The notes under the pieces were generated by a model, which searched no databases, was not told the DNA's origin, and saw only the letters and a program-made list of their open reading frames with translations. 64,000 nucleotides of DNA from assembly GCF_046119375.1 (NCBI RefSeq), contig NW_027362772.1, positions 314,650,001 to 314,714,000 on the forward strand, written 5' to 3'. This document shows, piece after piece, positions 10,040-61,296 of this stretch (position 1 is its first letter; every line of letters starts with the position of its first letter). Source of the DNA: Phyllobates terribilis (lineage: Eukaryota). The position numbers were made by a program, and so were the translations under genes.

Positions 10040-10043
10040 ACTT

Positions 10044-10061
10044 TGGCGTAGTCGGCAGGAT
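10044..10061 (+). promoter_or_regulatory. Primer-binding site for tRNA-Ser (element A)
   Basis: TGGCGTAGTCGGCAGGAT, 4 nt after the LTR; reverse complement of the 3' 18 nt of vertebrate tRNA-Ser (..AUCCUGCCGACUACGCCA), from recalled tRNA sequence. Confidence 0.9.
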
Positions 10062-11968: not shown

Positions 11969-12402
11969 AGTACGGTAAAGTGGAACTGTATATATTTACC
12001 CGTAAGGGTACAAGAACTGTTACAAGTACTGCTGCTAAGTAAAGTATAGTCCCCGTTGGGACCAGCAAACTGTTACCCGTGTGTCCCTATCCCTTAACAG
12101 GCTGAGGACTGTGAGCAGCCATCCCTTATCCCCACTGGCCGAGGACTGAGAGCGGCCATACCCCTTGTAAATAGTTGCGCTTCCTAAAGCGCCCCCTACT
12201 GGTTTTATAGAAGAACAAGAACATTTTATAAGAAGAGTTTTATATCAAAAAGTCTTATAATATAAGAAGTTACCCGTAATGTTATGTTGCTGATAATGTT
12301 TATAATGTTTTATATATTCGTGTATGTTTTGAAAAATTTTGTATGTTTGCATGTTTTGCTCTTTTACAGCCCGAGGACGTGCTGTGATTTACCAGGGGGG
12401 AA

Positions 12403-37400: not shown

Positions 37401-40400
37401 CTCTCACTCCAGCCTGACTGACAGCTATTCAGTCTCCACCATCCCAGCCTGACTGACAGCTATTCACTCTCCATTCACTCCAGCCTGACTGACAGCTATT
37501 CAGTCTCCTCTCACTCCAGCCTGACTGACAGCTATTCAGTCTCCACTCACTCCAGCCTGACTCACAGCTATTCAGTTTCCACCCTCCCAGCCTGACTCAC
37601 AGCTATTCAGTCTCCACTCACTCCAGCCTGACTGACAGCTATTCACCTACTCCAGCCTGACTGACAGCTATTCAGTCTCCACTCACTCCAGCCTGACTGA
37701 CAGCTATTCAGTCTCCACTCACTCCAGCCTGACTGACAGCTGTTCAGTCTCCACTCACTCCAGCCTGACTGACAGCTATTCAGTCTCCACTCACTCCAGC
37801 CAGACTGACAGCTATTCAGTCTCCACTCACTCCAGCCTGACTGAAAGCTATTTAGTCTCCACTCACTCCAGCCAGACTGACAGCTATTCAGTCTCCACTC
37901 ACTCCAGCCTAACTGACAGCTATTTAGTCTTCACCTTCCCAGCCTGACTGACAGCTATTCAGTCTCCACCCTCCCAGCCTGACTAACAGCTATTCAGTCT
38001 CCACCCTCCCAGCCTGACTGACAGCTATTCAGGCTCCACCCTCCCAGCCTGACTGACAGCTTTTCAGTCTCCACTCACTCCAGCCTGACTGACAGCTATT
38101 CAGTCTCCAATCACTCCAGCCTGCCTGACAGCTATTCAGTCTCCACCCTCCTAGCCTGACAGCTATTCAGTCTCTACTCACTCCAGCCTGACTGACAGCT
38201 ATTCAGTCTCCACCCTCCCAGCCTGACTGCTATTCAGTCTCCTCTCACTCCAGCCTGACTGACAGCTATTCAGTCTCCACTCACTCCAGCCTGACTGACA
38301 GCTATTCAGTCTCCACTCACTCCAGCCTGACAGCTATTCAGTCTCCACTCACTCCAGCCTGACTGAAAGCTATGTAGTCTCCACTCACTCCAGCCAGACT
38401 GACAGCAATTTAGTCTCCACCCTCTCGGCCTCCCTGACAGCTATTCAGTCTTCACCCTCCCAGCCTGACTGACAGCTATTCAGTCTCCACTCACTCCAGC
38501 CTGACTCACAGCTATTCAGTTTCCACCCTCCCAGCCTGACTCACAGCTAATCAGTCTCCACTCACTCCAGCCTGATTGACAGCTATTCACCCACTCCAGC
38601 CTGACTGACAGCTATTCAGTCTCCACTCACTCCAGCCTGACTGACAGCTATTCAGTGTCCACTCACTCCAGCCTGACTGACAGCTGTTCAGTCTCCACTC
38701 ACTCCAGCCTGACTGACAGCTATTCAGTCTCCCCTCACTCCAGCCAGACTGACAGCTATTCAGTCTCCACTCACTCCAGCCTGACTGACAGCTATTCAGT
38801 CTCCACTCACTCCAGCCAGACTGACAGCTATTCAGTCTCCACTCACTCCAGCCTGACTGAAAGCTATTTAGTCTCCACTCACTCCAGCCAGACTCACAGC
38901 TATTCAGTCTCCACTCACTCCAGCCTAACTGACAGCTATTTAGTCTTCACCTTCCCAGCCTGACTGACAGCTATTCAGTCTCCACCCTCCCAGCCTGACT
39001 AACAGCTATTCAGTCTCCACCCTCCCAGCCTGACTGACAGCTATTCAGGCTCCACCCTCCCAGCCTGACTGACAGCTTTTCAGTCTCCACTCACTCCAGC
39101 CTGACTGACAGCTATTCAGTCTCCACTCACTCCAGCCTGCCTGACAGCTATTCAGTCTCCACCCTCCTAGCCTGACAGCTATTCAGTCTCTACTCACTCC
39201 AGCCTGACTGACAGCTATTCAGTCTCCACCCTCCCAGCCTGACTGCTATTCAGTCTCCTCTCACTCCAGCCTGACTGACAGCTATTCAGTCTCCACTCAC
39301 TCCAACCTGACTGACAGCTATTCAGTCTCCACTCACTCCAGCCTGACAGCTATTCAGTCTCCACTCACTCCAGCCTGACTGAAAGCTATGTAGTCTCCAC
39401 TCACTCCAGCCAGACTGACAGCAATTTAGTCTCCACCCTCTCGGCCTCCCTGACAGCTATTCAGTCTTCACCCTCCCAGCCTGACTGACAGCTATTCAGT
39501 CTCCACTCACTCCAGCCTGACTGAAAGCTATTTAGTCTCCACTCACTCCAGCCAGACTGACAGCTATTCAGTCTCCACTCACTCCAGCCTAACTGACAGC
39601 TATTTAGTCTTCACCTTCCCAGCCTGACTGACAGCTATTCAGTCTCCACCCTCCCAGCCTGACTAACAGCTATTCAGTCTCCACCCTCCCAGCCTGACTG
39701 ACAGCTATTCAGGCTCCACCCTCCCAGCCTGACTGACAGCTTTTCAGTCTCCACTCACTCCAGCCTGACTGACAGCTATTCAGTCTCCACTCACTCCAGC
39801 CTGCCTGACAGCTATTCAGTCTCCACCCTCCTAGCCTGACAGCTATTCAGTCTCTACTCACTCCAGCCTGACTGACAGCTATTCAGTCTCCACCCTCCCA
39901 GCCTGACTGCTATTCAGTCTCCTCTCACTGCAGCCTGACTGACAGCTATTCAGTCTCCACTCACTCCAGCCTGACTGACAGCTATTCAGTCTCCACTCAC
40001 TCCAGCCTGACAGCTATTCAGTCTCCACTCACTCCAGCCTGACTGAAAGCTATGTAGTCTCCACTCACTCCAGCCAGACTGACAGCAATTTAGTCTCCAC
40101 CCTCTCGGCCTCCCTGACAGCTATTCAGTCTTCACCCTCCCAGCCTGACTGACAGCTATGCAGTCTCCACTCACTCCAGCCTGACTCACAGCTATTCAGT
40201 TTCCACCCTCCCAGCCTGACTCACAGCTAATCAGTCTCCACTCACTCCAGCCTGATTGACAGCTATTCACCCACTCCAGCCTGACTGACAGCTATTCAGT
40301 CTCCACTCACTCCAGCCTGACTGACAGCTATTCAGTCTCCACTCACTCCAGCCTGACTGACAGCTGTTCAGTCTCCACTCACTCCAGCCTGACTGACAGC

Positions 40401-43044
40401 TATTCAGTCTCCACTCACTCCAGCCAGACTGACAGCTATTCAGTCTCCACTCACTCCAGCCTGACTGAAAGCTATTTAGTCTCCACTCACTCCAGCCAGA
40501 CTGACAGCTATTTAGTCTTCACCTTCCTAGCCTGACTGACAGCTATTCAGTCTCCACCCTCCCAGCCTGACTGACAGCTATTCAGGCTCCACCCTCCCTG
40601 CCTGACTGACAGCTTTTCAGTCTCCAATCACTCCAACCTGACTGACAGCTATTCAGTCTCCACTCACTCCAGCCTGCCTGACAGCTATTCAGTCTCCACC
40701 CTCCTAGCCTGACAGCTATTCAGTCTCTACTCACTCCAGCCTGACTGACAGCTATTCAGTCTCCACCCTCCCAACCTGACTGCTATTCAGTCTCCTTTCA
40801 CTCCAGCCTGACTGACAGCTATTCAGTCTCCACCCTCCCATCTTGACTGACTGCTATTCAGTCTCCACTCACTCCAGCCTGACTGACAGCTATTCAGTCT
40901 CCACTCACTCCAGCCTGACAGACAGCTATTCAGTCTCCACTCACTCCAGCCTGACTGACAGCTGTTCACCCACTCCATCCTGATTGACAGCTAGTCAGTC
41001 TCCACTCACTCCAGCCTGACTGACAGCTATTCAGTCTCCACTCACTCCAGCCTGACTGACAGCTATTCAGTCTCCACTCACTCCAGCCTGACTGACAGCT
41101 ATTCTGTCTCCACTCACTCCAGCCTGACTGACAGCTATTCAGTCACCACCCTCCCAGCCTGACTGACAGCTATTCAGTCTCCACTCACTCCAGCCTGACT
41201 GACAGCTACTCAGTCTCCACCCTCCCAGTCTGACTGACAGCTATTCAGTCTCCTCTCACTCCAGCCTGACTGACAGCTGTTCAGTCTCCACTCACTCCAG
41301 CCTAACTGACAGCTATTCAGTCTCCCCCTCCCAGCCTGACTGACAGCTATTCAGTCTCCACTCACTCCAGCCAGACTGAAAGCTATTTAGTCTCCACTCA
41401 CTCCAGCCAGACTGACAGCAATTTAGTCTCCACCCTCCCAGCCTGACTGACAGTTATTCAGTCTCCACCCTCCCAGCCTGACTGACAACTATTCAGTCTC
41501 CACCCTCCCAGTCTGACTGACAGCTATTCAGTCTCCACCCTCCCAGCCTGACAGCTATTCAGTCTCCACTCACTCCAGCCTGACTGACAGCTATTCAGTC
41601 TCCACCCTCCCAGCCTGACAGCTATTCAGTCTCCTCTCACTCCAGCCTGACTGACAGCTATGCAGTCTCCACCATCCCAGCCTGACTGACAGCTATTCAC
41701 TCTCCATTCACTCCAGCCTGACTGACAGCTATTCACTCTCCATTCACTCCAGCCTGACTGACAGCTATTCAGTCTCCTCTCACTCCAGCCTGACTGACAG
41801 CTATTCAGTCTCCACCATCCCAGCCTGATTGACAGCTATTCACTCTCCATTCACTCCAGCCTGACTGACAGCTATTCAGTCTCCTCTCACTCCAGCCTGA
41901 CTGACAGCTATTCAGTCTCCACTCACTCCAGCCTGACTGACAGCTGTTCAGTCTCCACTCACTCCAGCCTGACTGACAGCTATTCAGTCTCCACTCACTC
42001 CAGCCTGACTGACAGCTATTCAGTCTCCACTTACTCCAGCCAGACTGACAGCTATTCAGTCTCCACTCACTCCAGCCTGACTGACAGCTATTCAGTCTCC
42101 ACTCACTCCAGCCTAACTGACAGCTATTCAGTCTCCACTCACTCCAGCCTAACTGACAGCTATTCAGTCTCCACCCTCCCAGCCAGACTGACAGCTATTC
42201 AGTCTCCACTTACTCCAGCCAGACTGACAGCTATTCAGTCTCCACTCACTCCAGCCTGACTGAAAGCTATTTAGTCTCCACCCTCCCAGCCTGACTGACA
42301 GCTATTCAGTCTCCACCTTCCCAGCCTGACTGACAGCTATTTAGTCTCCACCCTCCCAGCCTGACTCACAGCTATTCGGTCTCCACTCACTCCAGCCTGA
42401 CTGACAGCTATTCAGTCTCCACTCACTCCAGCCTGACTGACAGCTATTCAGTCTCCACTCACTCCAGCCTGACTGACAGCTATTCAGTCTCCACTCACTC
42501 CAGCCTGACTGACAGCTATTTAGTCTCCACCTTCCCAGCCTGACTGACAGCTATTTAGTCTCCACCCTCCCAGCCTGACTCACAGCTATTCGGTCTCCAC
42601 TCACTCCAGCCTGACTGACAGCTATTCAGTCTCCACTCACTCCAGCCTGACTGACAGCTATTCAGTCTCCACTCACTCCAGCCTGACTGACAGCTATTTA
42701 GTCTCCACCTTCCCAGCCTGACTGACAGCTATTTAGTCTCCACCCTCCCAGCCTGACTCACAGCTATTCGGTCTCCACTCACTCCAGCCTGACTGACAGC
42801 TATTCAGTCTCCACTCACTCCAGCCTGACTGACAGCTATTCAGTCTCCACTCACTCCAGCCTGACTGACAGCTATTTAGTCTCCACCCTCCCAACCTGAC
42901 TGACAGCTATTAAGTCTCCACCCACTTTAGCCTGACTGACAGCTATTCAGTCTCCACCCTCCCAGCCTGACTGACAGCTATTCAGTCTCCACCCTCCCAG
43001 CCTGACTGACAGATAATCAGTCTCCACCCACTCCAGCCTGACTG
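25490..43044. repeat. 17.5-kb satellite array of interspersed 36- and 35-bp units (~490 units)
   Basis: Units CAGCCTGACTGACAGCTATTCAGTCTCCACTCACTC and ...TCTCCACCCTCC; no interruptions seen. Confidence 0.97.
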
Positions 43045-43122
43045 TCAGATGCAGCTTGCAATGAGCAGTGTGAGGTCCCAGCAGCTGGAGGGACACTGAG
43101 GAGAACTAAGGAGTGATGCTAA

Positions 43123-46100
43123 TGTAGCACCCTGAGGACTCGGCTGCTACAGGGGTATTACACCTCAAGCCAGAGGTGTGGTATTCCACTCCCGGGTAAG
43201 GATGGAGTGTGGGACTGAGCTCAGATAGCTGCATACACTACATACATCCCATTTCCGGGGGACAGACCGACGGTACTCCCACCAGTATATGTGCAGGTAC
43301 GACAGTGTCTGTCCCTGGCTGGAGTGGGAGGGGGGTGGAACATCCCAGTAGTGTAGGGGCAGATAGGGGGAGCAGTCTGGGTAAGGCTAGGAGCTCATTG
43401 GGTGCTGGTCACCTGAGCTCACACATAGAGGGAGTATATAAGGTGGGCACCATCTTAGATCAGGGTCAGTCTTCTGTAGAGGGTCAGTCAGTCCTGAGAG
43501 AGGTCCAGGAGCGCCTGTAGAGAGAAGAGAGAGAGGAGAAGAGAAGGACCCAGAGGGGGAGAAGAAGGAACCCCAAGAACCCAGTATACAACCAGAAGGG
43601 TGAAGGGTTGGCACGCAAGGGAACCGGATCCCAAATTAGTGGAGGAGAGAAACTACCCTCAACTAAGAACCGGAGGCTGCGACATTACATGTGGAGCAGC
43701 CCCTCACCAAGTCCACTAAGAAGGCACACTGAGCATAGGGTCAGGGAAGCCAAAGAAGGTTCACCCAACAGGAGACCCGAGGGAGCCGGACATAAGTGGA
43801 CCCCTGGTGGGAACGGCCAGTAGAGAAGACAGTCAGAAAGGGAGCTCAGGACCACGCTCCAGAATTGCTTGGGGGTTGGCCGAGTCCAGGACCTGGTGGA
43901 CGCAGCACGGCTCGGGCGGTCACTCAAGGCCAGAGTGACCAACAGAACAGCAGTAAGTAAAAACCCTGAACTGCACAGCCCGACTCTGAGTCTTCTTACC
44001 ATCCACACTGCACCACCACTACCACCATCCTCTACACCTGACCCCCTGAGGCTATACCCCTCCCGTTGGGGGTTATACTACCACAGCTGCACATATACCA
44101 CCAGCCTCAGCGGACCCTGCTGCAGCGGCGGCCTTTTGACCTCAAATCAACGGGTGGCGTAGTCGACACTAAGAACAACTAATAACATCTGTAAAGACTG
44201 CCACACACTGAGTTTGACACCCTGGGCACGGACCGGGTCGCCGCCACTCGGAGACTACAACCCCCATCAGATCCGGCTCCGGGTAATCCCCGAACAGCAC
44301 TGGCCCAGGGGGCGCGTCAACTTTGGCGTAGTCGGCAGGATTTCGTGCCCGCAACCACCGGGTACTGTTTGCCTGAAGAAAAGTTCAAATTTACCTCAAG
44401 AAGAAGTCTCCCGCCGGTTCCAGAGGGTCCCCGCCATGGGACGCCATCACGGATCGTTTCCCGCCGGTTGCCCGCCATCTGCAGCTTTTTCCCGCCATTT
44501 CCAGAAGATTTCCCGCCTTGGAAGAGCGGACGCCATTATGGGCGTGCCAGAGGGTGGCAAGAGGTCACCTCCCATCGTGGGCCAGGTAAAGGAATGGCGC
44601 CAAAAGCGGAAACCGCCCCCACCAACGGAGACTGTGATGCTAGAGATGTCCATCAGCGTGAGAGAACTGCCCCTGGAACTGACAATCACAAAGTTGCCCC
44701 GGGACCACCTTCAATGTGGGCGGAGACAGAACAAGAGAGCGAAGATGGGTGCAGCCTGGAGAAGTCTGGAGAGAGCGCACCCGGAGACAAGAAGTCTGGA
44801 GAGGACTCCGGAGAAGTCGTACCCGGAGATGGAAGGAGAGTCAGGCAGCACCGACCCTGTGGTCAGGAGCCTGCTGCAAGCAACAACCCCACTAGGCTTA
44901 GTGGAGATCCTGGCACAGCTCCCCCGAGACCGGGAGTGTGCGCAGACCGCGCTGGAGCGCCTCGCATGGAGGATGGCCCAGGTGCAGCGAGAGATGCTGA
45001 CGAAGTGGAGCCGAGAGATGGCCCTGCAGGCAAGAACCCGCCAGCGAAGCACGCCACCCGAGACGAGGAGACAGACCGCCTCTGAGGATGGTGCAGGAGG
45101 AGTGAAGGCCGGAGACGGCGCCGAAGAGGGAGCTGAACAGATGGAGGCAGGTAAAGGGGACGTCACTACCCCGAGCCGAGAAACCGCGTGCCTGCCCCAG
45201 CTCCCCGTCGCAGAGCCCGAAAATCCCCCTGCCGTGCCCGTCGCTGCATCGTCACCGCTCCAGACAAGGCCTCAAGCAGAAGCCGCGGCCGCGACCCCTG
45301 TGACGTCACGCGCCTCAATCCTGAGCGCGGCAAAGCAGGAAACACCACCGGCCTGGTCGCAAGGTCTAGTACCCCCGGGCGCCGCAGTACCAACAGCGCC
45401 CTCTACCTCCACTGAGCCACCGGCCTGGTCGCTGGGCCAAGTAACCCCGGGCGCCGCCGTCTTCACGGTGCCCTTTACGTTCAGGGTACCCCAGGCCTGG
45501 TCGCAAGGCCTGGCGAACCCGGGCGCCGCCACCACCACCGCGCCCTCAACATCCACAGCGCCACACCTGGGTGAAGACCTATTTGCCCAGCATACGTGCC
45601 CGGATGGGCAGCCCTTTAGATGGCCACCGGAGTACTACCAACTGGAACTCCAAAAAGCAAGGCCCCTGGATGAGCCCCTGATCCCGGCTCCGGCGCCCGC
45701 CAAGATCACCCCACTCTCGCTGGAGGAAGGAGCTGGAGGACGTCGCCACTGATGTACAGTAGGAGCACTGTAAATAGTTACCCGTGAAGGTACAATAACT
45801 GTTACCATTATAGTCCCCGTTGGGACCAGTGAACTGTTCCAGTGTGTCCCATCTCCCCACAGGCTGAGGACTGTGAACAGCCATCCCTTTTCCCCACTGG
45901 TCGAGGACTGAGAGCGGCCATATTTCCCCTTGTATATAGTTGCGCTTTTTAAGGCGCCCCCTACTGGTTTTATAGGAAAGCTGTGTTATTCTACAAGAGA
46001 CTGTCGCACTTTACCCGGTCACAAGTTGCACCGTCGCCGGAGGAACAAGAAAGTTTACAAGAATGTTTATTATGAAAAAGTTTTATGCTGCAGAAATATA

Positions 46101-47403
46101 TATATAATGTTTTATATGTTTATGTTGTTATGAAAAAAAATTGTATGTTTATGGATGTTTTATTCTCTTACAGCCCGAGGACGTGCTGTGATTTACCAGG
46201 GGGGAATGTAGCACCCTGAGGACTCGGCTGCTACAGGGGTATTACACCTCAAGCCAGAGGTGTGGTATTCCACTCCCGGGTAAGGATGGAGTGTGGGACT
46301 GAGCTCAGATAGCTGCATACACTATATACATCCCATTTCCGGGGGACAGACCGACGGTACTCCCACCAGTATATGTGCAGGTACGACAGTGTCTGTCCCT
46401 GGCTGGAGTGGGAGGGGGGTGGAACATCCCAGTAGTGTAGGGGCAGATAGGGGGAGCAGTCTGGGTAAGGCTAGGAGCTCATTGGGTGCTGGTCACCTGA
46501 GCTCACACATAGAGGGAGTATATAAGGTGGGCACCATCTTAGATCAGGGTCAGTCTTCTGTAGAGGGTCAGTCAGTCCTGAGAGAGGTCCAGGAGCGCCT
46601 GTAGAGAGAAGAGAGAGAGGAGAAGAGAAGGACCCAGAGGGGGAGAAGAAGGAACCCCAAGAACCCAGTATACAACCAGAAGGGTGAAGGGTTGGCACGC
46701 AAGGGAACCGGATCCCAAATTAGTGGAGGAGAGAAACTACCCTCAACTAAGAACCGGAGGCTGCGACATTACATGTGGAGCAGCCCCTCACCAAGTCCAC
46801 TAAGAAGGCACACCGAGCATAGGGTCAGGGAAGCCAAAGAAGGTTCACCCAACAGGAGACCCGAGGGAGCCGGACATAAGTGGACCCCTGGTGGGAACGG
46901 CCAGTAGAGAGGACAGTCAGAAAGGGAGCTCAGGACCACGCTCCAGAATTGCTTGGGGGTTGGCCTAGTCCAGTACCTGGTGGACGCAGCACGACTCGGG
47001 CGGTCACTCAAGGCCAGAGTGACCAACAGAACAGCAGTAAGTAAAAACCCTGAACTGCACAGCCCGACTCTGAGTCTTCTTACCATCCACACTGCACCAC
47101 CACTACCACCATCCTCTACACCTGACCCCCTGAGGCTATACCCCTCCCGTTGGGGGTTATACTACCACAGCTGCACATATACCACCAGCCTCAGCGGACC
47201 CTGCTGCAGCGGCGGCCTTTTGACCGCAAATCAACGGGTGGCGTAGTCGACACTAAGAACAACTAATAACATCTGTAAAGACTGCCACACACTGAGTTTG
47301 ACACCCTGGGCACGGACCGGGTCGCCGCCACTCGGAGACTACAACCCCCATCAGATCCGGCTCCGGGTAATCCCCGAACAGCACTGGCCCAGGGGGCGCG
47401 TCA
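43123..47403 (+). mobile_element. Non-autonomous LTR element B (CSD-deleted derivative)
   Basis: 1197-bp LTRs 43123-44319 and 46207-47403 (~7 differences by eye); perfect TSD CTAA; tRNA-Ser PBS 44324-44341; PPT before 46207. Confidence 0.95.
44538..45752 (+). CDS. Element B ORF: homolog of the element C protein lacking the C-terminal coiled coil and CSD
   Basis: MGVPEGGKR...PLDEPLIPAP...LEE|GAGGRRH*; in-frame fusion to the same terminal codons as element A; start codon assumed. Confidence 0.7.
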   Translation: MGVPEGGKRSPPIVGQVKEWRQKRKPPPPTETVMLEMSISVRELPLELTITKLPRDHLQCGRRQNKRAKMGAAWRSLERAHPETRSLERTPEKSYPEMEGESGSTDPVVRSLLQATTPLGLVEILAQLPRDRECAQTALERLAWRMAQVQREMLTKWSREMALQARTRQRSTPPETRRQTASEDGAGGVKAGDGAEEGAEQMEAGKGDVTTPSRETACLPQLPVAEPENPPAVPVAASSPLQTRPQAEAAAATPVTSRASILSAAKQETPPAWSQGLVPPGAAVPTAPSTSTEPPAWSLGQVTPGAAVFTVPFTFRVPQAWSQGLANPGAATTTAPSTSTAPHLGEDLFAQHTCPDGQPFRWPPEYYQLELQKARPLDEPLIPAPAPAKITPLSLEEGAGGRRH

Positions 47404-48204
47404 CTAACATAGATTTTCAGAGTAAATGCACCAGCCTCATCAGCTCTATTTATCAATATGCAGATTGTATTGTAAAATCTTGTAAAAGATTTTGAATAAA
47501 CCAAAGAGAGCAAGATAATTCAATGCTACGAGATCACGACTTGACCCGACCAGTGTCGCGGTCCTCATATAATGCCTGGTCCGTGCTGCTGTGTCATTCA
47601 CCTTAATTTCTAAATCTATTTTCAATTTTTTCCCCTAATTAACACATTGCCGTCCGGACGCAGGGGTGAGTCTGCCGCTCTTTGCTCCCCTAGAAATACA
47701 GAATATATATTTTGCTTGAGTTCTGATCATTCTGATATAAGTAACATCTAAAGGATGCAAAATAAAAAAATTATGACATAAAACTGCAAATGTGAACGGC
47801 GCCTGATTGTGTGTTCTATGTTCGTATAAGGCGGAGTTTGTTGGATCACATCATTAGTAATATCCAATGTTCCTCCAGATGCTTCATCCACCTGCATTGA
47901 CTTTGGATGCAGATGACGTTCGGGATAGTTATGTTCTCATTAATATTCATGAATATTGATAAATGCACCAAAAACAACAAATACAATGAGAAGTAACAGA
48001 GAGAAAGTCAAACTGATCCGCAGAGATCCCAACACATCATCCCGCGTAGATCAGTGTATGAAGGGGATTTACACCAACCCCAGAAACCAATGGCTGTGTG
48101 AATACAGCCAGCTCCAGACCCAGCGGTGGTGAAACCGGGGGCAGGGCTGACAACCTCTCACACATGTGTACAGGCTGGTTGTCAGCAGTAATAGGCTAGG
48201 ATCA

Positions 48205-51200
48205 TGACGCGCCCCCTGGGACATATTCCTTTTTGAGGGGAATACCCGGCACCGGATCAGATGGGGGGTTGTAGTCTCCGAGCGGCTGTGACCCGGCCCC
48301 GTGCCCAGGGCGTCAAGCTCAGTGTTATGTGGCAGCTTTACAGATGTTACTAAAGTTCTTTTGTGTCGACTACGCCACCCGTTGTGATGCGGTCACTGTG
48401 GCCGCCGCTGCAGCAGGGTCCGCTGAGGCTGATGGTGGATGCGCAGCTTGGTGGGATAACCCCCAACGGGAGGGGTATAGCCTCAGAGGGGACAGGCGCA
48501 GAGGATGGGGGTTGTGGTGGTGCGGTGCAGCCGGCAATGAAGACAGACTCGGGTTGTGCAGTTAAGGGTGTTTACTTACTGCAGATGTTGTACTGGTCAC
48601 TCCAGCTGCTAGTGACCACCCGAGCCGTGCTGCGTCCACCAGGTCCTGGATCCAGCCAACCCCCAAACAAGTCCGGAGCGTGGCCCTGAGCTCTCCCTCT
48701 GTCCTTTCTTCAGCCGTCCCCACCAGTGATCCACCTAGGTCCAGCTCCCTCGGGCCTTCTGTTGGGACACCCTTGGCCCTGGGTTCCCTGACCCTTCATG
48801 TGGTGTGCCTTCGGGGTGAATATGGTGGGTGACCGTGGCAAACGCTGCCCACGATCTCCGGTCTCTGGCTAGGGATTGTTTTTGCCCCCACCAGCTTGGG
48901 TTCCGGTACCCTGATGCTGACTCCTCACCCGGTGCTCTAGTTTGGGTTCTTGGGTCCCTTCAGTCTTCCCCCTCTGGGTCTTTCTCTGCTCCACTCTCTC
49001 TCTCTCCAGGGCTGCTGTTTCCTTCTCTCTCCTCTCCAACTCACTTTCTGCGTCTGAACTTGTCCTCTGCAGCTGACTGACCCTGATCTAAGTTGGTGCC
49101 CTCCTTATATATCCCTCTATGTGTGAGCTCAGGTGACCAGCACCCAATGAGCTCCTATCACTACCCAGACTGCTCCCCCTATCTGCCCCTACACTACATG
49201 GGATGTACCACCCCCCTCCCACTCCAGCCAGGAACAGGCTCGGTTGTACCTGCACATTTCTAAGTGGGAGTACCGTCGGCCTGCTCCTCTGAAATGGGAT
49301 GTATGTAGTGCATGCAGTCTATCTGAGCTCAGTTCCACACTCCATCCTTACCCGGGAGTGGAATATCACACCTCTGGGTTGAGGTGCAATACCCCTGTAG
49401 CAGCCGAATCCTCAGGGTGCTACATTCCCCCCTGGTAAATCACAGCACGTCCTCGGGCTGTAAAGACATAAAACACCAAAACATACAATTTTTTTTTTCA
49501 TATAAACATATAAAACATATAAAACATTATATATATAAAACTTTTTTATATAAACATTCTCGTAGACTTCTCTTGTCTCTGGTTCCTCCTCCGGACACTG
49601 TGCAACGTGTGTCCGGGAAAAGTGCGACAGTCTCTTAGAAAAACTGGTTTTCTATAAAACCGGTAGGGGGCGCTTTAGGAAGCGCAACTATATACAGGGA
49701 GAAGTTGGAAGTTGGCCGCTCTCAGTCCTCGGCCAGGTAGAGGGAAGGGAATGGCTGCTCACAGTCCTCAGCCTGTAGGATAAAGGGGTTAACGGGTAAA
49801 CAGTTCACTGGTCCCAACGGGGACTATTTTAGCTCTAACGGTTCACTGTGCCCCGACGGGCAACTATATACAGTCTCTACTCCCGTCCTCAACGACGGCT
49901 CCCTCCTGCTTTTTCTTGATATGGTGTTGCTTCAGACCCGTCCGGGTCCTCTGGCTCCTCCTCTCCGTACCGCAACTCCTCCTCCGTCAAGCGGTGTACG
50001 TGGAGGGCGTAAGGTCCTTTGGCACACTTGTGCCGGGTGAAAGTGACTTCGTCTCCGACGTAGAGGTCACGGCCTTTGTGACCTTCCGGCAGGTGGGACT
50101 CGACGTCTCTGCGAGTCACAAAAACGTCACCGCGGTTGTTACGGTCCCGAATAAAGCCCCACCCATGCTGCGGGTTGAACTTTATCACTGTCCCGATGGT
50201 GCGGGGACAATGCGCTGCACGGGGGTTCCTCCTAGTCCGGCTCTTCTGCTCCGCGCTCCGGATTTGGGCCTGTTGTTCTCTGACCCGCCTCTCCTCCCGT
50301 TCTCTCTTAAACTCTGCTAGCTGCTGACGACAACACTCAGTACGCTCAGCGGCGACTGCCCGAGTTTCCTGAGTGAACCCCATTAGATCTTCTCCGGTGG
50401 GGTCCCACTCAAACTGTGCTTCCGCTAGCGGGGGCGAGATCCGTGCCACGGGCTTCGGAGCCGGAATCAGGGGTTCATCCAGGGGTCTTAGTCTCTGCTG
50501 CCGTTCCAGCTCATGGTATCCTTCGGGCCAGATGAAGGGCCGCCCGTCCGGCCATGTGAGCTGGCTGAAGAGGTCCTCCCCCAGGTGTGGCACCCTTGGT
50601 ATTGCGGGCGCGGGCGCGGTGGTGGTGGCGCCCGGGTTGCCCAGGCCTTGCGGCCAGGCCTGGGGCACCTGGAAGGTGAAGGGCACCGTTAGGACGGCGG
50701 CGCCCTGGGCTACCTGGCCTTGCGGCCAGGCCGGAGGCTCCGCGGAGGTAGGGGGCGCTGTTGGTGGTGCGGCGCCCGGGGGTACTAGGCCTTGCGACCA
50801 GGCTGGTGGTAATTCCTGCTTTGTCACGCTCCGGGTCGAGGCGCGTGACGTCACAGGGGTCGCTGCGGCGGCTTCCGGTCGGGGCCTAGTCCATGGCGGT
50901 GACATGGCGGCTACGGGCACAGCAGGGGGACTTTCGGGCTCTGCGACGGGGAGCTGGGGCAGGTGGGCGGTTTCTCGGCTTGGGGTATAGGCGTCCCCTT
51001 TACCTGCCTCCATGCGTTCGGCTCCCTCCTCGGCGCCGTCTCCGGCCTTGGGTCCTCCCGCGCCATCCTCAGAGGCGGTCTGCTTCCTCGTCTCGGGCGG
51101 CGTGCTCCGCTGACAGGTCTCGGTCTGCTGGGCCATCTCACGGCTCCACTGCGCCAACGTCTCTCGCTGCACCCGGGCCATCCTCCTTGCGAGGCCCTCC

Positions 51201-53194
51201 AGAGCAGTTTGTGCACACTCCCGGTCTCGGGGGAGCTGCGCTAAGATCTCCGCTAGACCTAGCGGGGTTGTGGACTCTAGCAGGCTCCTGACCATCGGGT
51301 CGGTGCTGCTCTGCTCTTCTTCCGGCAGGCTCCTGGCCAGCGGGCCGGTGCTGCTCTGCCCTCCTTCCTCGGTCTCTAGCAGACTCCTGGCCAGCGGGCC
51401 GGTGCTGTTCTGCTTTCTCTCCATCTCCGGGTGAGCTCCTCCGCTACTCCTCGTTAGACCTCTTGCCTCCGGGTGCGCTCGCTCCAGACTGCTCCAGGCG
51501 ACACCCATCTTTGTTCTCTCCTTTCGTCTCCTCCCACTTCGAGGGCGGTCCCGGGGCAACTCGGTGACTGTCAGCTCCAGGGGTAGTTCTTTCACGCTGA
51601 CAGACACCTCCAACATCACAGTCTCTGTTGGTGGGGGCGGTTTCCACTTTTGGCGCCATTTTCTGTCCTGGCCCACGATGGGAGGTGGCCTCCTGCCCTC
51701 CTTTGGCACGCCCATAATGGCGTCCGCTGCTCTTCCAAGGCGGGAAATCTGCGGTTTTGGCGGGAAGCGTCGCCCAGTGGCGGGAAACTCTGCAGATGGC
51801 GGGAACAAGCTGGAAATGGCGGACAATCGGCGGGAAACGACTGGTGATGGAGTCCGATGGCGTGGACCCTCCGGAACCGGCGGGAGACTTCTTTCTGAGG
51901 TAAACTTGCACTTTTCTTCAGGCACGCAGTACCCGGGTGTTGCGGGCACGTAATCCTGCCGACTACGCCAAAGTTGACGCGCCCCCTGGGACATATTCCT
52001 TTTTGAGGGGAATACCCGGCACCGGATCAGATGGGGGGTTGTAGTCTCCGAGCGGCTGTGACCCGGCCCCGTGCCCAGGGCGTCAAGCTCAGTGTTATGT
52101 GGCAGCTTTACAGATGTTACTAAAGTTCTTTTGTGTCGACTACGCCACCCGTTGTGATGCGGTCACTGTGGCCGCCGCTGCAGCAGGGTCCGCTGAGGCT
52201 GATGGTGGATGCGCAGCTTGGTGGGATAACCCCCAACGGGAGGGGTATAGCCTCAGAGGGGACAGGCGCAGAGGATGGGGGTTGTGGTGGTGTAGTGCAG
52301 ACGGCAGTGAAGACAGAGTCGGGTTGTGCAGTTAAGGGTGTTTACTTACTGCAGATGTTGTACTGGTCACTCCAGCTGCTAGTGACCACCCGAGCCGTGC
52401 TGCGTCCACCAGGTCCTGGATCCAGCCAACCCCCAAACAAGTCCGGAGCGTGGCCCTGAGCTCTCCCTCTGTCCTTTCTTCAGCCGTCCCCACCAGTGAT
52501 CCACCTAGGTCCAGCTCCCTCGGGCCTTCTGTTGGGACACCCTTGGCCCTGGGTTCCCTGACCCTTCATGTGGTGTGCCTTCGGGGTGAATATGGTGGGT
52601 GACCGTGGCAAACGCTGCCCACGATCTCCGGTCTCTGGCTAGGGATTGTTTTTGCCCCCACCAGCTTGGGTTCCGGTACCCTGATGCTGACTCCTCACCC
52701 GGTGCTCTAGTTTGGGTTCTTGGGTCCCTTCAGTCTTCCCCCTCTGGGTCTTTCTCTGCTCCACTCTCTCTCTCTCCAGGGCTGCTGTTTCCTTCTCTCT
52801 CCTCTCCAACTCACTTTCTGCGTCTGAACTTGTCCTCTGCAGCTGACTGACCCTGATCTAAGTTGGTGCCCTCCTTATATATCCCTCTATGTGTGAGCTC
52901 AGGTGACCAGCACCCAATGAGCTCCTATCACTACCCAGACTGCTCCCCCTATCTGCCCCTACACTACATGGGATGTACCACCCCCCTCCCACTCCAGCCA
53001 GGAACAGGCTCGGTTGTACCTGCACATTTCTAAGTGGGAGTACCGTCGGCCTGCTCCTCTGAAATGGGATGTATGTAGTGCATGCAGTCTATCTGAGCTC
53101 AGTTCCACACTCCATCCTTACCCGGGAGTGGAATATCACACCTCTGGGTTGAGGTGCAATACCCCTGTAGCAGCCGAATCCTCAGGGTGCTACA
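48205..53194 (-). mobile_element. Non-autonomous LTR element C with intact cold-shock-domain ORF
   Basis: 1220-bp LTRs 51975-53194 (5') and 48205-49424 (3'); perfect TSD ATCA; PBS 51953-51970; PPT ~49425-49433. Confidence 0.96.
49889..51715 (-). CDS. ~608-aa protein with C-terminal cold-shock domain (frame stays open upstream to an ATG at 51994, giving 701 aa)
   Basis: CSD at 49997-50194 with RNP1-like HGWGFI and RNP2-like DVFVT; strong-context ATG (GCCATTATGG) conserved in A, B and C; synonymous-rich divergence versus element A. Confidence 0.85.
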   Translation of the reverse strand: MGVPKEGRRPPPIVGQDRKWRQKWKPPPPTETVMLEVSVSVKELPLELTVTELPRDRPRSGRRRKERTKMGVAWSSLERAHPEARGLTRSSGGAHPEMERKQNSTGPLARSLLETEEGGQSSTGPLARSLPEEEQSSTDPMVRSLLESTTPLGLAEILAQLPRDRECAQTALEGLARRMARVQRETLAQWSREMAQQTETCQRSTPPETRKQTASEDGAGGPKAGDGAEEGAERMEAGKGDAYTPSRETAHLPQLPVAEPESPPAVPVAAMSPPWTRPRPEAAAATPVTSRASTRSVTKQELPPAWSQGLVPPGAAPPTAPPTSAEPPAWPQGQVAQGAAVLTVPFTFQVPQAWPQGLGNPGATTTAPAPAIPRVPHLGEDLFSQLTWPDGRPFIWPEGYHELERQQRLRPLDEPLIPAPKPVARISPPLAEAQFEWDPTGEDLMGFTQETRAVAAERTECCRQQLAEFKREREERRVREQQAQIRSAEQKSRTRRNPRAAHCPRTIGTVIKFNPQHGWGFIRDRNNRGDVFVTRRDVESHLPEGHKGRDLYVGDEVTFTRHKCAKGPYALHVHRLTEEELRYGEEEPEDPDGSEATPYQEKAGGSRR

Positions 53195-53269
53195 ATCACA
53201 CCAGGGGATATTTACTCATCCAAGAGAATCGGACCGATTATGCTGATCTAAACTGTGCTGTGCTGCATT

Positions 53270-54720
53270 GACGGCTGGGGTGCAGTGATGACCGTGGGGC
53301 AGTGATGACCGTGGTGCAGTGATGCTCGGGTAAAGTGATGCCAGGGTGAAGTGATGCCAGGATGCAGTGATGGCCAGGATGTAGTAATGCTCGGGTAAAG
53401 TGATGCCAGGGTGAAGTGATGGCCAGGATGCAGTGATGGCCAGGATGTAGTAATGCTCGGGTAAAGTGATGCCAGGGTGAAGTGATGCCAGGATGCAGTG
53501 ATGGCCAGGATTTTAGTAATGCTCGGGTAAAGTGATGCCAGGGTGAAGTGATGCCAGGATGCAGTGACGGCCAGGATGTAGCTATGCTCGGGTAAAGTGA
53601 TGCCAGGGTGAAGTGATGCCAGGATGCAGTGATGGCCAGGATGTAGTAATGCTCGGGTAAAGTGATGGCAGGGTGAAGTGATGCCAGGGTGAAGTGATGC
53701 CAGGATGCAGTGACGGCCAGGATGTAGTAATGCTCGGGTAAAGTGATGCCAGGGTGAAGTGATGCCAGGATGTAGTGACGGCCGGGTGCTGTGATGGCTG
53801 TGATGCACTGATGGTGGCTTGCAGTGACAGCTAGGATGCAGTGATACCAGGGTGAAAGTGACAGCCAATGTGCAGTGATGACCGGGGTGCAGTGACGGCC
53901 AGGATGCAATGATGGTTGGGATGCAGTGATAGCCGGGGTGCAGTGATACCAGGGCGAAGAGACAGCCAGGATGCAATGATGGCCGGGGTGAAGTGACAGC
54001 CAGTGTGCAGTGATACCAGGGAGAAGAGACAGCCAGGATGCAATGATGGCCGGGTGCTGTGACGGCTGGGGAGCAGTGATGGCTGGGATGCAGTGACAGC
54101 CGGGTTGCAGTGACGTTCAGGGTGCAGTGATTACTGGGTTGCAGTGATACCGGGGAGAAGAGACAGCCAGGATGCAATAATGGCCGGAGGCAGTGACTGC
54201 TGGGGTGCAGTGACTTCCGGGGTGCAGTGACATTTGGTGTGCAGTGACGTTTGTGGTGCAGTGTTGTTCAGGGTGCAGTAACGGCCGGGTTGAAGTAACG
54301 GCTGGGGTACAGTGATGGCCAGGATGCAGTGACATTCGAGGTGCAGTGACGCTCGGGGTGCAGTGTTGTTCAGGGTGCAGTGACGGCCGGGTTGCAGTGA
54401 AGTTCAGGGTGCAGTGATTACTGGGTTGCAGTGATACCGGGGAGAAGAGACAGCCAGGATGCAATGATGGCCGGAGGCAGTGACTGCTGGGGTGCAGTGA
54501 CTTCCGGGGTGCAGTGACATTTGGGGTGCAGTGACGTTTGTGGTGCAGTGTTGTTCAGGGTGCAGTGACGGCCGGGTTGAAGTAACGGCTGGGATACAGT
54601 GATGGCCAGGATGCAGTGACATTCAAGGTGCAGTGACGTTCGGGGTGCAGTGACGTTCAGGGTGCAGTGACATTCGGGGTGCAGTGACGTTCGGGGTGCA
54701 GTGACGTTCGGGGTGCAGTG
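53270..54720. repeat. Degenerate 16/17-bp minisatellite
   Basis: Units such as GCCAGGGTGAAGTGAT, GCTCGGGTAAAGTGAT and TTCGGGGTGCAGTGACG; explains the His/Trp-rich pseudo-ORFs. Confidence 0.85.
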
Positions 54721-55839: not shown

Positions 55840-57034
55840 TGTAGCACCCTGAGGATTCGGCTGCTACAGGAGTATTGCACCTCAACCCAGAGGTGTGATA
55901 TTCCACTCCCGGGTAAGGATGGAGTGTGGAACTGAGCTCAGATAGACTGCATGCACTACATACATCCCATTCCAGAGGAGCAGGCCGACGGCACTCCCAC
56001 TTAGAAATGTGCAGGTGCGACCGAGCCTGTTCCTGGCTGGAGTGGGAGGGGGGAGGAACATCCCATGTAGTGTAGGGGCAGATAGGGGGAGCAGTCTGGG
56101 TAGTGGTAGGAGCTCATTGGGTGCTGGTCACCTGAGCTCACACATAGAGGGATATATAAGGAGGGCACCAACTTAGAATCAGGGTCAGTCAGCTGCAGAG
56201 GACAAGTCAGATGCAGAGAGCAGGAAACAGCAGCCCTGGAGAGAGAGAGAGTGGAGTGAAGAAAGACCCAGAGGGGGACAAAGAAGGGACCCAAGAACCC
56301 AAATAAGAACACCGGGTGAGGAGTCAGCAAGAGGGTACCGGAACCCAAGCTGGTGGGGGCAAAGACATTCCCCAGCCAGAGACCGGAGACCGTGGGCAGT
56401 GTCTGTCACGGTCACCCACTACATTCACCCTGAAGGCACACCACAGGAAGGGTCAGGGAACCTAAGGCCAAAGGTTGCCCAACAGAAGGCCCGAGGGAGC
56501 TGGACTTAGGTGAATCACTGGTGGGGACGGCTGAAGTAAGGACAGAGGGAGAGCTCAGGGCCACGCTCCGGACTTGTTTGGGGGTTGGCCGGATCCAGGA
56601 CCTGGTGGACGCAGCACGGCTCGGGAGGTCACTTGGAGCTAGAGTGACCAGGAACATCTGCAGTAAGTAAAGACCCTTAACTGCACTACCCGAGTCTGTC
56701 ATCATTACCGGCTGCACCGCACCACCACAACCCCCATCCTCTGCGCCTGTCCCCTCTGAGGCTATACCCCTCCCGTTGGGGGTTATCCCACCAAGCTGCG
56801 CATCCACCATCAGCCTCAGCGGACCCTGCTGCAGCGGCGGCCACAGTGACCGCATCACAACGGGTGGCGTAGTCGACACAACGAACTTTAATAACATCAG
56901 TAAAGACTGCCACATAACCCTGAGCTTGACGCCCTGGGCACGGGACCGGGTCACAGCCGCTCGGAGACTACAACCCCCCATCTGATCCGGTGCCGGGTAT
57001 TCCCCTCAAAAAGGAATATGTCCCAGGGGGCGCG

Positions 57035-57037
<3 letters not shown>
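55840..57037 (+). mobile_element. Solo LTR (1198 bp) of the element C subfamily
   Basis: TGTAGCACCCTGAGGA...GAATATGTCCCAGGGGGCGCGTCA; TATA on both sides (TSD within a TA tract); no PBS follows. Confidence 0.93.
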
Positions 57038-58500: not shown

Positions 58501-59750
58501 ACATAGGGATCTAACTCTGAGGAAAGCATTTAATAATGTCACCGTCATAAATGGGATCGCACAGGAGCTGGGGGCTGACACAAGGTTTCCCTATTTTATG
58601 ATGAGTGAGGAGTTGTTGTACCGGGTTCCGAAAGTGAGGGAGGAGCTTATGGAACAGTTATTGGTGCCGGGGCCCTATAGACGGAGGGATTTGGAAATGG
58701 CCCATTGACATGTCCTGGGTGGCCATCTGGGAGTGAAAAAACTCAGGAACGGATCATGCAGAGGTTTTCTTGGCCCGGATGTCACCAGGAAATCTTTAAG
58801 TATTGCAGGTCCTGCCCTACGTGCCAGTTAACCGCCCTCACCTCTCACTTTCGAAGTCCCCTCGTGCCATTGCCCATCATTGAAGTTCCGTTTGAGAGAA
58901 TTGCTATGGACTTGGTCGGTCCCCTGGTTAAATCTGCTCGTGGGCATCAATATATATTGGTCATCCTGGACTATGCCACACGCTATCCTGAAGCGATCCC
59001 CCTGAGAAACTCCTCAGCAAAGAGTATAAATCGCGAATTGGTCCACGTATTTTCCCGGACTGGATTACCAAGGGAGATCCTGACCAATCAGGCGACACCC
59101 TTCATGAGTAAGGTGATGAGGGAATTATGTAAGGCCCTGCAAATCTCCCAATTGAAGACGTCAGTATACCGTCCTCAGACAGATGGCCCTGTGAAAAGGT
59201 TCAATAAAACTCTTAAGAGTATGCTGAGGAAGGCCATAGAAAAGGATGGTAGAGACTGGGACTGTCTCCTACCATATCTGTTGTTCTCTTTCCGAGAGGT
59301 TCCACAGGCCTCTACTGGGTTCTCACCCCTGAACTTCTGCATTGCCGACATCCGAGGGGTCTCCTTGATATAGCAAAGGAAACCTGGGAAGCTGAAGTCA
59401 CGTCCCACAGGAGCGTCATCGAGCACGTCGCACTGATGCAGGAGAGGATTGCAAAGGTGATGCCCAATGTAAAAGGACATCTCTTCCAGGCACAAGAGGA
59501 TCAAGCCAGGGTTTAAAACCGGTCAGCCAGAGTGAGGCAATTCAATCCTGGAGACTGAGTCCTCGTGCTAATTCCTACCGTGGAAAGTAAATTCTTGGCC
59601 AAGTGACAAGAGCCTTCTGAGGTGGTGGAAAAGCTTGGTGAAGTGAATTATAAGATTCATCAACCAGGAAGACGTAAACTATACCAGATCTACCAAGTCA
59701 ATCTCATCAAGCCATTGCAAGATAGAGAGGCTGTTGAAGCTCCGTGCTTG
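58500..59750 (+). pseudogene. Gmr1 integrase
   Basis: Zn motif ...CRSCPTCQ; FERIAMDLVGPL, DYATRYPEAIPL, RPQTDG; multiple lesions. Confidence 0.88.
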
Positions 59751-59904
59751 CTGGACAAGCCAGAAGCTGAGGTTGGAAGAGTCGCAATAGCGGAGACGCT
59801 GACAAAGGCCCAAAAACAGCAGTGTTGGGAAATGCTGCAGAAGAACAGGGATCTGTTCTCAGAATTGCCAGGGTGCACAAAGGTCATAGAAACACAAGGT
59901 TCTG

Positions 59905-61296
59905 ATGGAGCCACATGTACAGGTGAACTTGAAGCCCTATCGAACTCCTGAGGCCCGACAAGAGTTTATCTCCAAGGAAGTGGATCGTATGTTGAAACTC
60001 GGGGTCATTGAGGAATCCAAGAGCGGATGGTCGAGACTGATTGTCCTGGTTCCAATACCCGATGGCGAATGGAGATTCTGCAATGACTATAGGAAGTTGA
60101 ATGAGGTCTCCAAATTCGACGAGTATCCGATGCCGCGGGTCGATGAGCTGACTGAGTGAGAGACATGGGCCAGCAAGGTACCTAACCACCTTGGATTTAA
60201 CGAAGGGATATTGGCAGATCCCCATGTCACAGGGAGCCAAGGAGAAGACTGCTTTTTCTACGCCCGACGGATGCTTCCAATATGTCCGGATGCCGTTTGG
60301 ACTGCAGGGGGCCCCGGCCACCTTCCAGAGGGCCATGAACCGAATCCTTGCAACCCATAATAAATACGCCGCGGCATACCTGGACGATATTGTTATATTC
60401 AGCCCAGACTGGGGAAGTCATCTGGAAAAAGTCCAGGCGGTGTTTGATGCTCTAAAGAAGGCGGGGTTTTCAATAAATCCCCAAAAATGTGCCATGAGGA
60501 AAAAAGAAGCCAAATACCTGGGCTATGTAGTGGGTAGAGGCGAGATCAAACCTCAAATCAGTAAAGTGGAGGCAATCCAAACCTGGCCGAGACCACTGTC
60601 GAAGAAGCAAGTTAGAACCTTTCTAGGAATCATGGCATTCTACAGGAGGTTCATCCCAAACTTCGCCATGATGGCCGCACCCCTGACTGACCTCCCAAAG
60701 GGGAAGAAATCACCAATGGCCAAATGGACTGAAGAGGCGGAGACGGAGAATGAAAGGGGCTCTTTGTAAGCAACCGGTGATGGTTGCCCCCGACTTCAAG
60801 AGGGAATTTATACTCCAAACAAACGCCTCAGATGTCGGTTTAGGAGCAGTCCTTTCCCAGGAGATACATGGGGAGGAGCACCTTGTCCTCTACCTGAGTA
60901 GGAAGCTGTCCTCGTTGTGAGAAGAATTATTCTGTCATAGAAAAGAAATGCTTGTCCACAAAGTGGGCGGTGGACTCGTTACGGTACTATCTGTTGGGAC
61001 GAAAGTTTAAACTGGTATCAGACCATGCCCCACTCAGGTGGATGAGGGAGAAAAAAGGGAAAAATGCTAGAGTCACCCGTTGGTTTTTAGCCCTACAGGA
61101 TTTCAGCTCCCATGTGGAACATAGAGCTGGGAAGCTAAATTGGAATACTGATGCCCTCTCAAGAATCCCTTGTCTAATAGTAGAACGTGCCAAGCCCCAC
61201 AGCTTTAGGCAGAGGGGTGAGGTATGTAAAGCAGCTAACGGACATATAGTTGATGGGAGGTATGTGTCACAAAGATGGTTGTCATCTGTGATGTAA
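59905..61296 (+). pseudogene. Gmr1 reverse transcriptase and RNase H
   Basis: DYRKLN, DLTKGYWQ, MPFGLQGAPATFQR, YLDD, KWAVDSLRYYLLGRKF; stops and frameshifts. Confidence 0.9.

Follow-up and report, generated by a model that had tools for sequence, protein, structure and literature searches.

Introduction

Non-autonomous long terminal repeat (LTR) elements that accompany an autonomous partner are well known, examples being the plant TR-GAG, BARE2/BARE1, LARD and TRIM elements and the ETn/MusD pair of the mouse, and in the usual picture such elements are stripped-down RNAs or, at most, gag-only. Recognition sequences that resemble those of an autonomous element, combined with an unrelated U3 region and unrelated cargo, are the classic sign that a non-autonomous element exploits an autonomous one. 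Proteins with a cold-shock domain (CSD), such as the Y-box and Lin28 proteins, act as translational and small-RNA regulators. Gag-only non-autonomous LTR elements (TR-GAG) have been reported in plants. Endogenous retroviruses (ERVs) of birds have repeatedly acquired a CSD (pfam00313), which was read as adaptive for the element (Mol Biol Evol 2025, PMC12287698). Helper-matched non-autonomous LTR elements, TR-GAG elements and the gain of a CSD by pol-bearing bird ERVs are already known. Here we analyse a stretch of 64,000 nucleotides of the poison frog Phyllobates terribilis (contig NW_027362772.1, positions 314,650,001 to 314,714,000 of the forward strand; hereafter the window, with coordinates counted from its first nucleotide), which contains a family of LTR elements (A, B, C and the solo LTR D) whose single open reading frame (ORF) encodes a CSD protein, and a Ty3/gypsy element, G, that is likely their helper.

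Results

The three LTR elements A, B and C measure 4.3-5.0 kb each and are joined by the solo LTR D. Element C (4990 bp, 48205-53194, minus strand) is complete and possesses LTRs, a target-site duplication (TSD), a primer-binding site (PBS) and a polypurine tract (PPT), all the parts by which an LTR retrotransposon is structurally defined. Its 5' LTR (51975-53194, minus strand, TGTAGCACCC...GCGCGTCA) and 3' LTR (48205-49424, minus strand) are both 1220 bp long and differ at 5 positions (99.59% identity), and the element is bordered by the 4-bp duplication TGAT (53195-53198 and 48201-48204). The 5' LTR is followed by an ACTT spacer and a 19-nt PBS, TGGCGTAGTCGGCAGGATT (together 51952-51974, minus strand), complementary to tRNA-Ser (AGA/TGA), and then by the leader (51716-51951, minus strand), which lies between the PBS and the start codon of the ORF. 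The PPT CCAGGGGGGAA (49425-49435, minus strand) abuts the 3' LTR, and directly upstream of it stands the motif CAGCCCGAGGACGTGCTG, which is kept in all lineages. Human tRNA-Ser-AGA-1-1 and tRNA-Ser-TGA-2-1 end in 19 nt to which this PBS is perfectly complementary; their published sequences (PMC10359600) stood in for a frog gene, none for tRNA-Ser being found in the window or the retrieved loci.

Element A (8795-13647, plus strand, LTRs 8795-10039 and 12403-13647) carries 1245-bp LTRs with 8 differences (99.36% identity), and element B (43123-47403, plus strand, LTRs 43123-44319 and 46207-47403) carries 1197-bp LTRs with 7 differences (99.42%). All three have LTR tips of the form TG..CA (TGTAGCACCC...GCGCGTCA). 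D (55840-57037, plus strand) is 93% identical to the LTR of C and flanked by TATA, within a (TA)n tract. A reading made from the sequence alone, before any database search (hereafter the sequence-only reading), had described three young elements with 1.2-kb LTRs, a tRNA-Ser PBS and a PPT, and this description is borne out by LTR identities of 99.36-99.59% and by the match to the published tRNA-Ser. The 4-bp TSDs that it ascribed to the elements hold for C and for B (CTAA), whereas the flanks of A, CGCA and CACA, agree at 3 of 4 positions only, with the mismatch inside a unit of the 71-bp satellite in which A is inserted. Since the paired LTRs diverge by only 0.4-0.6%, A, B and C are recent insertions by this sequence measure, probably a few million years old at most if about 1e-9 substitutions per site per year are assumed. 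The internal regions (1.9-2.6 kb) are nearly filled by the ORF, and between the subfamilies they are 77-85% identical in pairwise comparison.

A short inverted repeat opens each LTR (53165-53194, minus strand; 5182-5211, plus strand; L004:8451-8480). Its arms vary by lineage yet stay complementary, reading TGTAGCA...TGCTACA in A, B, C, D and the further copy E (see below) and TGTGGCG...CGCCACA in Anomaloglossus; in G the repeat is imperfect (TGTGGAA...TTACCACA). It could be a conserved hairpin or att feature beside the PPT.

Neither gag nor protease, reverse transcriptase (RT), RNase H or integrase was detected in A, B or C by Pfam or by tblastn with gag and pol of G; the sequence-only reading had likewise seen no capsid, protease, RT or integrase motifs. 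Even at E<=1, Pfam returned for the ORF nothing but the CSD and a sub-threshold coiled-coil match. BLASTP of the CSD protein against Gag and pol of the helper candidate gave no match, an exhaustive HMMER search of 1.84 billion representatives gave matches through the CSD region only, none of them a Gag, and that search showed no full-length similarity to Y-box proteins at E<=0.001. The AlphaFold2 model of the whole protein has no capsid-like domain, at low confidence (mean predicted local distance difference test score, pLDDT, 42). The N-terminal ~500 aa were considered as a Gag and rejected, as Pfam, NCBIfam, exhaustive HMMER and BLASTP against the helper Gag were all without a Gag match, and AlphaFold2 likewise gave no Gag relationship.

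The ORF of C (49889-51715, minus strand) is intact and encodes 608 aa plus stop, starting with MGVP at 51715, a start conserved in all copies. The ORF tool had listed a frame of 701 codons (49889-51994, minus strand) that is open from within the LTR, because C and E have an in-frame ATG in the U5 end (51975-51994, minus strand). As A and B are without this ATG, it is improbable that the family needs an isoform with a longer N-terminus, and the extension upstream of MGVP is probably leader rather than coding, since a 38-bp deletion in B shifts the frame there. The sequence-only reading had assigned one long ORF to each element, which is true of C in its intact form. In A the ORF is broken by a 1-bp deletion near 11293 into pieces at 10296-11396 and 11291-11968, with the CSD at 11657-11875 (plus strand), and in B (ORF 44538-45752) a 510-bp in-frame deletion (junction 45725/45726, with GGAG microhomology) has taken out the charged helix and the CSD.

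The C protein begins with a region in which AlphaFold2 predicts, at low confidence, an amphipathic helix (aa 165-200; 51116-51223, minus strand), beyond which the chain is disordered, rich in Pro and Ala and marked by PAW-QG repeats (aa ~201-375). The copy alignment then reveals a conserved W/P block (aa 376-449; 50369-50590, minus strand). Next come a long charged helix and, with it, the arginine-rich KSRTRRNPR (together aa 450-505; 50201-50368, minus strand; pLDDT 75-94), the CSD (aa 506-576; 49988-50200, minus strand), on which Pfam, structure model and fold search agree, and an acidic C-terminal tail (49892-49987, minus strand). The segment before the CSD had been called a coiled coil and is better described as a long, highly charged predicted helix. 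According to the whole-protein model the chain is mostly disordered, with long helices at aa 165-200 and 449-496; owing to its pLDDT of 42 this model was left out of the fold search.

That the ORF encodes a CSD, as first proposed from the letters, was confirmed by PF00313 (35.1 bits against a gathering threshold of 27, E 1.2e-8), the sole significant Pfam domain; an NCBIfam search gave Csp-type matches only. Eight family members went into a model of the C-terminal 203 aa, which reached pLDDT 85-95 over a five-stranded oligonucleotide/oligosaccharide-binding (OB) barrel that is preceded by a 48-residue helix. In Foldseek the predicted barrel matched CspA, CspE, YB-1 and YBX2 (target-normalised template-modelling score 0.78-0.91, E 3e-7), and a BFVD fold search gave phage and giant-virus CSDs only, with no retroviral protein. 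The affinity of the domain was judged by profile scores and loop length. A CSD profile of seven family members, run against the CSDs of the PDB (best E 1e-9), scored best with YB-1 and YBX2 (41.5 bits, one 1-residue gap) and lower with E. coli CspA (38 bits), Lin28 (26) and CSDE1 and CARHSP1 (about 16). The beta3-beta4 loop has Y-box length, whereas alignment to bacterial Csp requires a 5-residue gap. The CSD is thus likely of Y-box origin, with the small margin of just 3 bits for YB-1 over CspA. The RNP1-like GWGFI and, within the RNP2-like VFVT of C, the residues VFV are invariant among the family CSDs, and an unusual loop, RRDVExHLPxGHxGRDL, is common to the family relatives.

A second intact copy, E, occurs elsewhere in P. 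terribilis (L001:7941-13029, TSD ACAA), its internal region being 87% identical to that of C (12.8% diverged). Both copies hold an open frame of ~2.1 kb, and the coding indels between them are all multiples of three. Comparing C and E by the Nei-Gojobori method for each ORF segment, we obtained a ratio of non-synonymous to synonymous substitution rates (dN/dS) of 0.24 for the whole ORF, 0.38 for the N-terminal 375 aa, 0.17 for the W/P block, 0.11 for the charged helix plus basic stretch and 0.032 for the CSD (4.3 non-synonymous versus 25.7 synonymous differences, binomial p 5e-13); for C versus A the CSD ratio is 0.10. By these ratios, purifying selection acts on the ORF and is most intense in the CSD, and low values across ORF and CSD argue that the protein, the CSD above all, matters to the lineages still transposing. 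The leader between PBS and start codon (51716-51974, minus strand; L001:9184-9442) differs between C and E at only 2 of 258 positions, and dS, at 0.86 over the 3' half of the ORF, drops steeply to 0.26 over the 5' half. This suggests that either the RNA itself is constrained, for example by a packaging signal that extends into the ORF, or the lineages have recombined.

The likely helper, the autonomous Ty3/gypsy element G (1-6218, plus strand; recognised by Pfam, LTR and PPT), runs off the window at its 5' end; neither G nor D had been mentioned in the sequence-only reading. It comprises the Gag C-terminus with a CCHC knuckle (1-702), a 1418-aa pol (558-4814) with DTGS protease, RVT_1, RNase H, Integrase_H2C2 and rve, a PPT, ACTAGGGGGGAA (5170-5181), and a 1037-bp 3' LTR (5182-6218, TGTGGAACCC...GGTGCGTCA), all on the plus strand. 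Over the last ~365 nt of this LTR, its R/U5-side part (5855-6218, plus strand), identity to the corresponding stretch of the A, B, C and D LTRs is 73-84%, whereas the other ~670 nt, presumably U3, resemble the LTRs of the CSD elements in the first ~30 nt only. PPT and LTR tips match as well. A full-length G copy in P. terribilis (L005:10620-18794) is near-identical to A, B, C and E in LTR end, ACTT spacer, 19-nt PBS and ~60 nt of leader, and the likeness of the leaders extends ~120 nt past the LTR. Within this common stretch a hairpin, GUGCCCG/CGGGUAC, is predicted; its sequence is invariant and covariation consequently gives it no support. The Gag of G (L005:12026-13117) shows no similarity to the CSD protein by BLASTP. 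With LTR tips, R/U5, spacer, PBS, leader hairpin and PPT matching, and U3 and cargo unrelated, a G-like element is likely the helper of the CSD elements. Their Ty3/gypsy affiliation is read entirely from these common cis sequences, which support a lineage dependent on Ty3/gypsy and not a retrovirus-like one.

G pol is 96% identical to P. terribilis proteins, and its nearest named homologues are labelled 'Gypsy retrotransposon integrase-like'. G is near-intact and sits in the same 71-bp satellite as A. A different, decayed Ty3/gypsy pol is present at 58705-61176, with an integrase piece at 58.7-59.4 kb and an RT/RNase H piece at 59.9-61.2 kb that are 27-51% identical to G pol; because their order is non-collinear, the pieces appear rearranged or derived from two elements.

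Sequence relatives of the CSD protein were found solely in Dendrobatidae (P. terribilis, Ranitomeya variabilis, R. imitator) and Aromobatidae (Anomaloglossus baeobatrachus). These frog proteins are 26-42% identical and carry the RRDVExHLPxGHxGRDL loop, and every other match was an unrelated multi-CSD protein. As far as was searched, the family would be confined to dendrobatoid frogs; that none turned up in other frogs carries little weight, transposable elements being masked by annotation pipelines. Word-indexed protein searches matched P0001 only and say little on distribution, since they meet the CSD only past residue 500 of an otherwise low-complexity protein. Comparable small LTR elements, equipped with a tRNA-Ser-like PBS, house most of the relatives, and NCBI labels copies as single-exon 'uncharacterized protein' genes. 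In Anomaloglossus, P0003 lies within a 4.9-kb element with 1284-bp LTRs of 99.5% identity, and P0006 in a similar element that is broken by a Penelope-like element. In U5 end, ACTT spacer, leader hairpin and PPT-upstream motif both elements are as in the window; their PBS core differs and probably matches another tRNA-Ser isoacceptor. The G copy of L005 sits inside a second, divergent CSD-element lineage of P. terribilis, whose protein is 42-45% identical and whose tRNA-Ser PBS (9618), CSD (~18754-19197) and PPT motif (19797) belong to flanks at 9618-10620 and 18795-19830 on either side of the nested G. Between lineages, the first 400 aa of the protein show no conservation.

Several other structures were met at these loci. 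The NCBI gene model P0042 is a 35-kb chimera joined across the L005 elements. A 1142-aa ORF in L003 was considered as an autonomous relative and rejected, as it stems from a Penelope-like element (YIDD RT plus GIY-YIG; L003:4776-8204, no Pfam match at E<=0.01) nested in an Anomaloglossus CSD ORF, where the insertion, with a 263-bp target duplication (5104-5366 and 9984-10246), makes a fusion frame. For P0002 of R. variabilis (L002:9217-13727) neither PBS nor PPT was recognised; patchy repeats (86, 339 and 140 bp, 94-96% identical) reach its ATG, and P0002 could belong to an old element that has been rearranged or be a gene duplicated locally.

The surroundings of the elements are repetitive. 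The 71-bp satellite (95-97% unit identity) occupies 6218-8791, 13646-14376 and 62973-64000 and is interrupted by G and A; as it recurs at the window end, the whole window appears to lie in satellite-rich, probably heterochromatic DNA. A 17.5-kb array at 25494-43048 has a 36-bp unit with a higher-order period of 107 bp and a strong C-over-G skew (GC skew about -0.47). Arrays at 15491-18495 and 20885-22968 consist of 39-bp (GC-rich) and 31-bp units, and the long 'ORFs' listed in them are repeat artefacts. A degenerate 16-17-bp minisatellite (53278-54720; higher-order periods 65, 131 and 287 bp) adjoins C.

Discussion

Our analysis favours, with a probability of roughly 0.55, that A, B, C and D form a non-autonomous LTR family of poison frogs which parasitises G-type Ty3/gypsy elements and encodes a protein that preferentially coats its own RNA. 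A parasitic LTR lineage with its own CSD protein had been proposed from the sequence alone, and cis signals without enzymes, a candidate helper in the window and purifying selection are consistent with it; the helper role of G-type elements, RNA binding, preference for own RNA and a packaging benefit are what we infer. The parasite RNA would be transcribed from its own unrelated U3, presumably its own promoter, and the element would keep whatever the helper machinery recognises, namely the LTR tips (for integrase), R/U5, ACTT spacer, tRNA-Ser PBS, leader and PPT. The hairpin behind the PBS together with the leader would serve as the presumed packaging signal into helper Gag particles, in which tRNA-Ser would prime, helper RT would copy and helper integrase would finally insert the element with a 4-bp duplication. 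The protein, for its part, might bind single-stranded RNA through arginine-rich helix and CSD, while helices and disordered region could drive oligomerisation or condensation. By preferentially coating its own transcript, in the manner of LINE-1 ORF1p, it would stabilise or remodel the parasite RNA and raise its share of helper Gag particles. ORF1p is known to coat LINE-1 RNA, and retrotransposition requires that this protein condense (PMC10202459, PMC9410894); HIV replication, in turn, is aided by the YB-1 of the cell (PMC6040738). Only tentatively, and below even odds, do we extend this reading to a hyperparasite that has swapped Gag for an ORF1p-like RNA coat built on a captured Y-box CSD and so out-competes its Ty3/gypsy helper for packaging. 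If true, this would be a convergent reinvention of the LINE-1 strategy in the LTR world, and the CSD protein would be the first non-Gag protein shown as required by a non-autonomous LTR element.

Several points weigh against the favoured reading. About eight family copies were examined in all, and dN/dS between copies reflects selection on active lineages, being silent on which function is selected. B, although without a CSD, still has intact LTRs and a TSD, and if its deletion predates its insertion, the CSD would not be needed in cis. Of the four residues that YB-1 uses for base stacking, two are replaced, W65 by K and H87 by T (T/A/N family-wide), which may alter RNA binding. Confidence in the whole-protein model is low. 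Outside the PBS block, moreover, the cis regions of G are only 73-84% identical to those of the CSD elements, and a closer helper than G may exist elsewhere.

The position and layout of the ORF invite another explanation, namely that it is an extremely divergent Gag in which a CSD has replaced the zinc-knuckle nucleocapsid, making the family a TR-GAG-type element that builds or co-assembles particles. The ORF indeed occupies the gag slot, 260 nt past the LTR, begins with MG and then a basic stretch, and places its nucleic-acid-binding domain C-terminally like nucleocapsid in Gag; the predicted helices could oligomerise, and TR-GAG elements are known from plants. We nevertheless regard this as unlikely, given that no Gag or capsid profile matched, that the helper Gag showed no similarity, that no distant Gag emerged among 1.84 billion representatives, that AlphaFold2 predicts disorder plus two long helices instead of a two-lobed capsid fold, and that the N-terminal 400 aa are unconserved between lineages.

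The same variable N-terminus could also be seen as an arms-race surface, since it is disordered and fast-evolving (dN/dS about 0.4-0.5) and unalignable between lineages. Together with the regulation of translation and small RNAs by Y-box and Lin28 CSD proteins, this would fit a protein that targets the host, sequestering or remodelling the small-RNA or translational-control machinery of germ cells and thereby weakening silencing of family and helper alike. Such a role seems improbable to us: the sequence indicates no specific host partner, no segment has a dN/dS above 1, and competitors would profit too from a benefit in trans, so that strong selection within a non-autonomous lineage becomes harder to explain.

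We disfavour still more clearly a CSD that is a mere passenger, that is, a fragment of a host Y-box gene transduced into a defective element without a role in transposition. Bird ERVs did gain CSDs several times (PMC12287698), and among solved structures the frog CSD is closest to Y-box CSDs; however, it is under strong purifying selection between element lineages, and domain and loop persist at ~26-42% identity in two frog families and at least two lineages of one genome. Least probable of all is a host-domesticated or restriction-type gene lying between LTRs, for instance a dominant-negative against the Ty3/gypsy helper, because the NCBI models of single-exon 'uncharacterized protein' genes and the R. 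variabilis locus without clear PBS/PPT structure are set against multiple young insertions at varied sites and orientations, each with TSD, PBS and PPT, and against frameshifts, deletions and nested insertions as in transposable elements.

Under the favoured reading, a parasite of a parasite would have retained a private, putative RNA-binding protein that is not a Gag since at least the divergence of two frog families. A young pair with its putative helper adjacent offers a tractable system for what decides RNA packaging, and lets one ask whether RNA chaperones can replace nucleocapsid functions. In practical terms, the CSD family accounts for some of the 'uncharacterized protein' gene models in poison-frog annotations.

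Compared with the known non-autonomous LTR elements, the CSD family is alike in its intact LTRs, PBS, PPT and TSD and its lack of RT and integrase, and, as in the known pairs, R/U5, PBS and leader match the partner while U3 and internal region differ, with amplification in trans inferred here. TRIM, LARD and ETn have no conserved ORF, TRIM and LARD being non-coding, whereas the CSD family keeps a 608-aa ORF by purifying selection; TR-GAG and BARE2 encode a recognisable Gag, whereas the conserved protein here is a CSD protein and not a recognisable Gag. Furthermore, vertebrate host and Ty3/gypsy partner set the family apart from the non-autonomous elements listed above.

The likeness to LINE-1 ORF1p would be one of function only, in that both are non-enzymatic, presumably oligomerising proteins with a helix, an RNA-binding domain and disordered regions. 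ORF1p has an RNA-recognition motif and a C-terminal domain instead of a CSD, shares no homology with the frog protein, and belongs to an autonomous non-LTR element in which it works with ORF2p by target-primed reverse transcription. With YBX1/2/3 the frog protein has in common the loop length, a Pro/Ala-rich region N-terminal to the CSD and adjoining charged regions. Its CSD, nearest to those of YB-1 and YBX2, is just ~30-35% identical to YBX CSDs, with the W65/H87 equivalents replaced, and the protein, which lacks the alternating basic/acidic C-terminal domain and any full-length similarity to the Y-box family, differs in architecture and is encoded in a mobile element.

The sequence-only reading did not recognise this architecture as a described family, and in the literature (Dfam and Repbase not covered) we found no description of a Ty3/gypsy-dependent, enzyme-less element that has a selected non-Gag CSD protein as its sole cargo and has persisted throughout a superfamily of frogs, and none specifically for amphibians; the acquisition of a CSD by an LTR element as such is already published for bird ERVs (PMC12287698). 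These bird elements are, like the frog family, vertebrate LTR retroelements that encode a CSD, and belong to the Retroviridae (ERV-A/B, ERV-G), known by their RT, with the CSD added at varying positions (PMC12287698). In contrast to their retroviral gag-pol(-env) backbone, the frog elements contain no retroviral genes, having neither pol nor gag; the CSD protein is their sole cargo, the likely helper is a Ty3/gypsy element, with purifying selection and persistence throughout the family both documented. Together, the frog family and the bird ERV acquisitions suggest that CSD proteins are a general advantage for retroelement RNAs.

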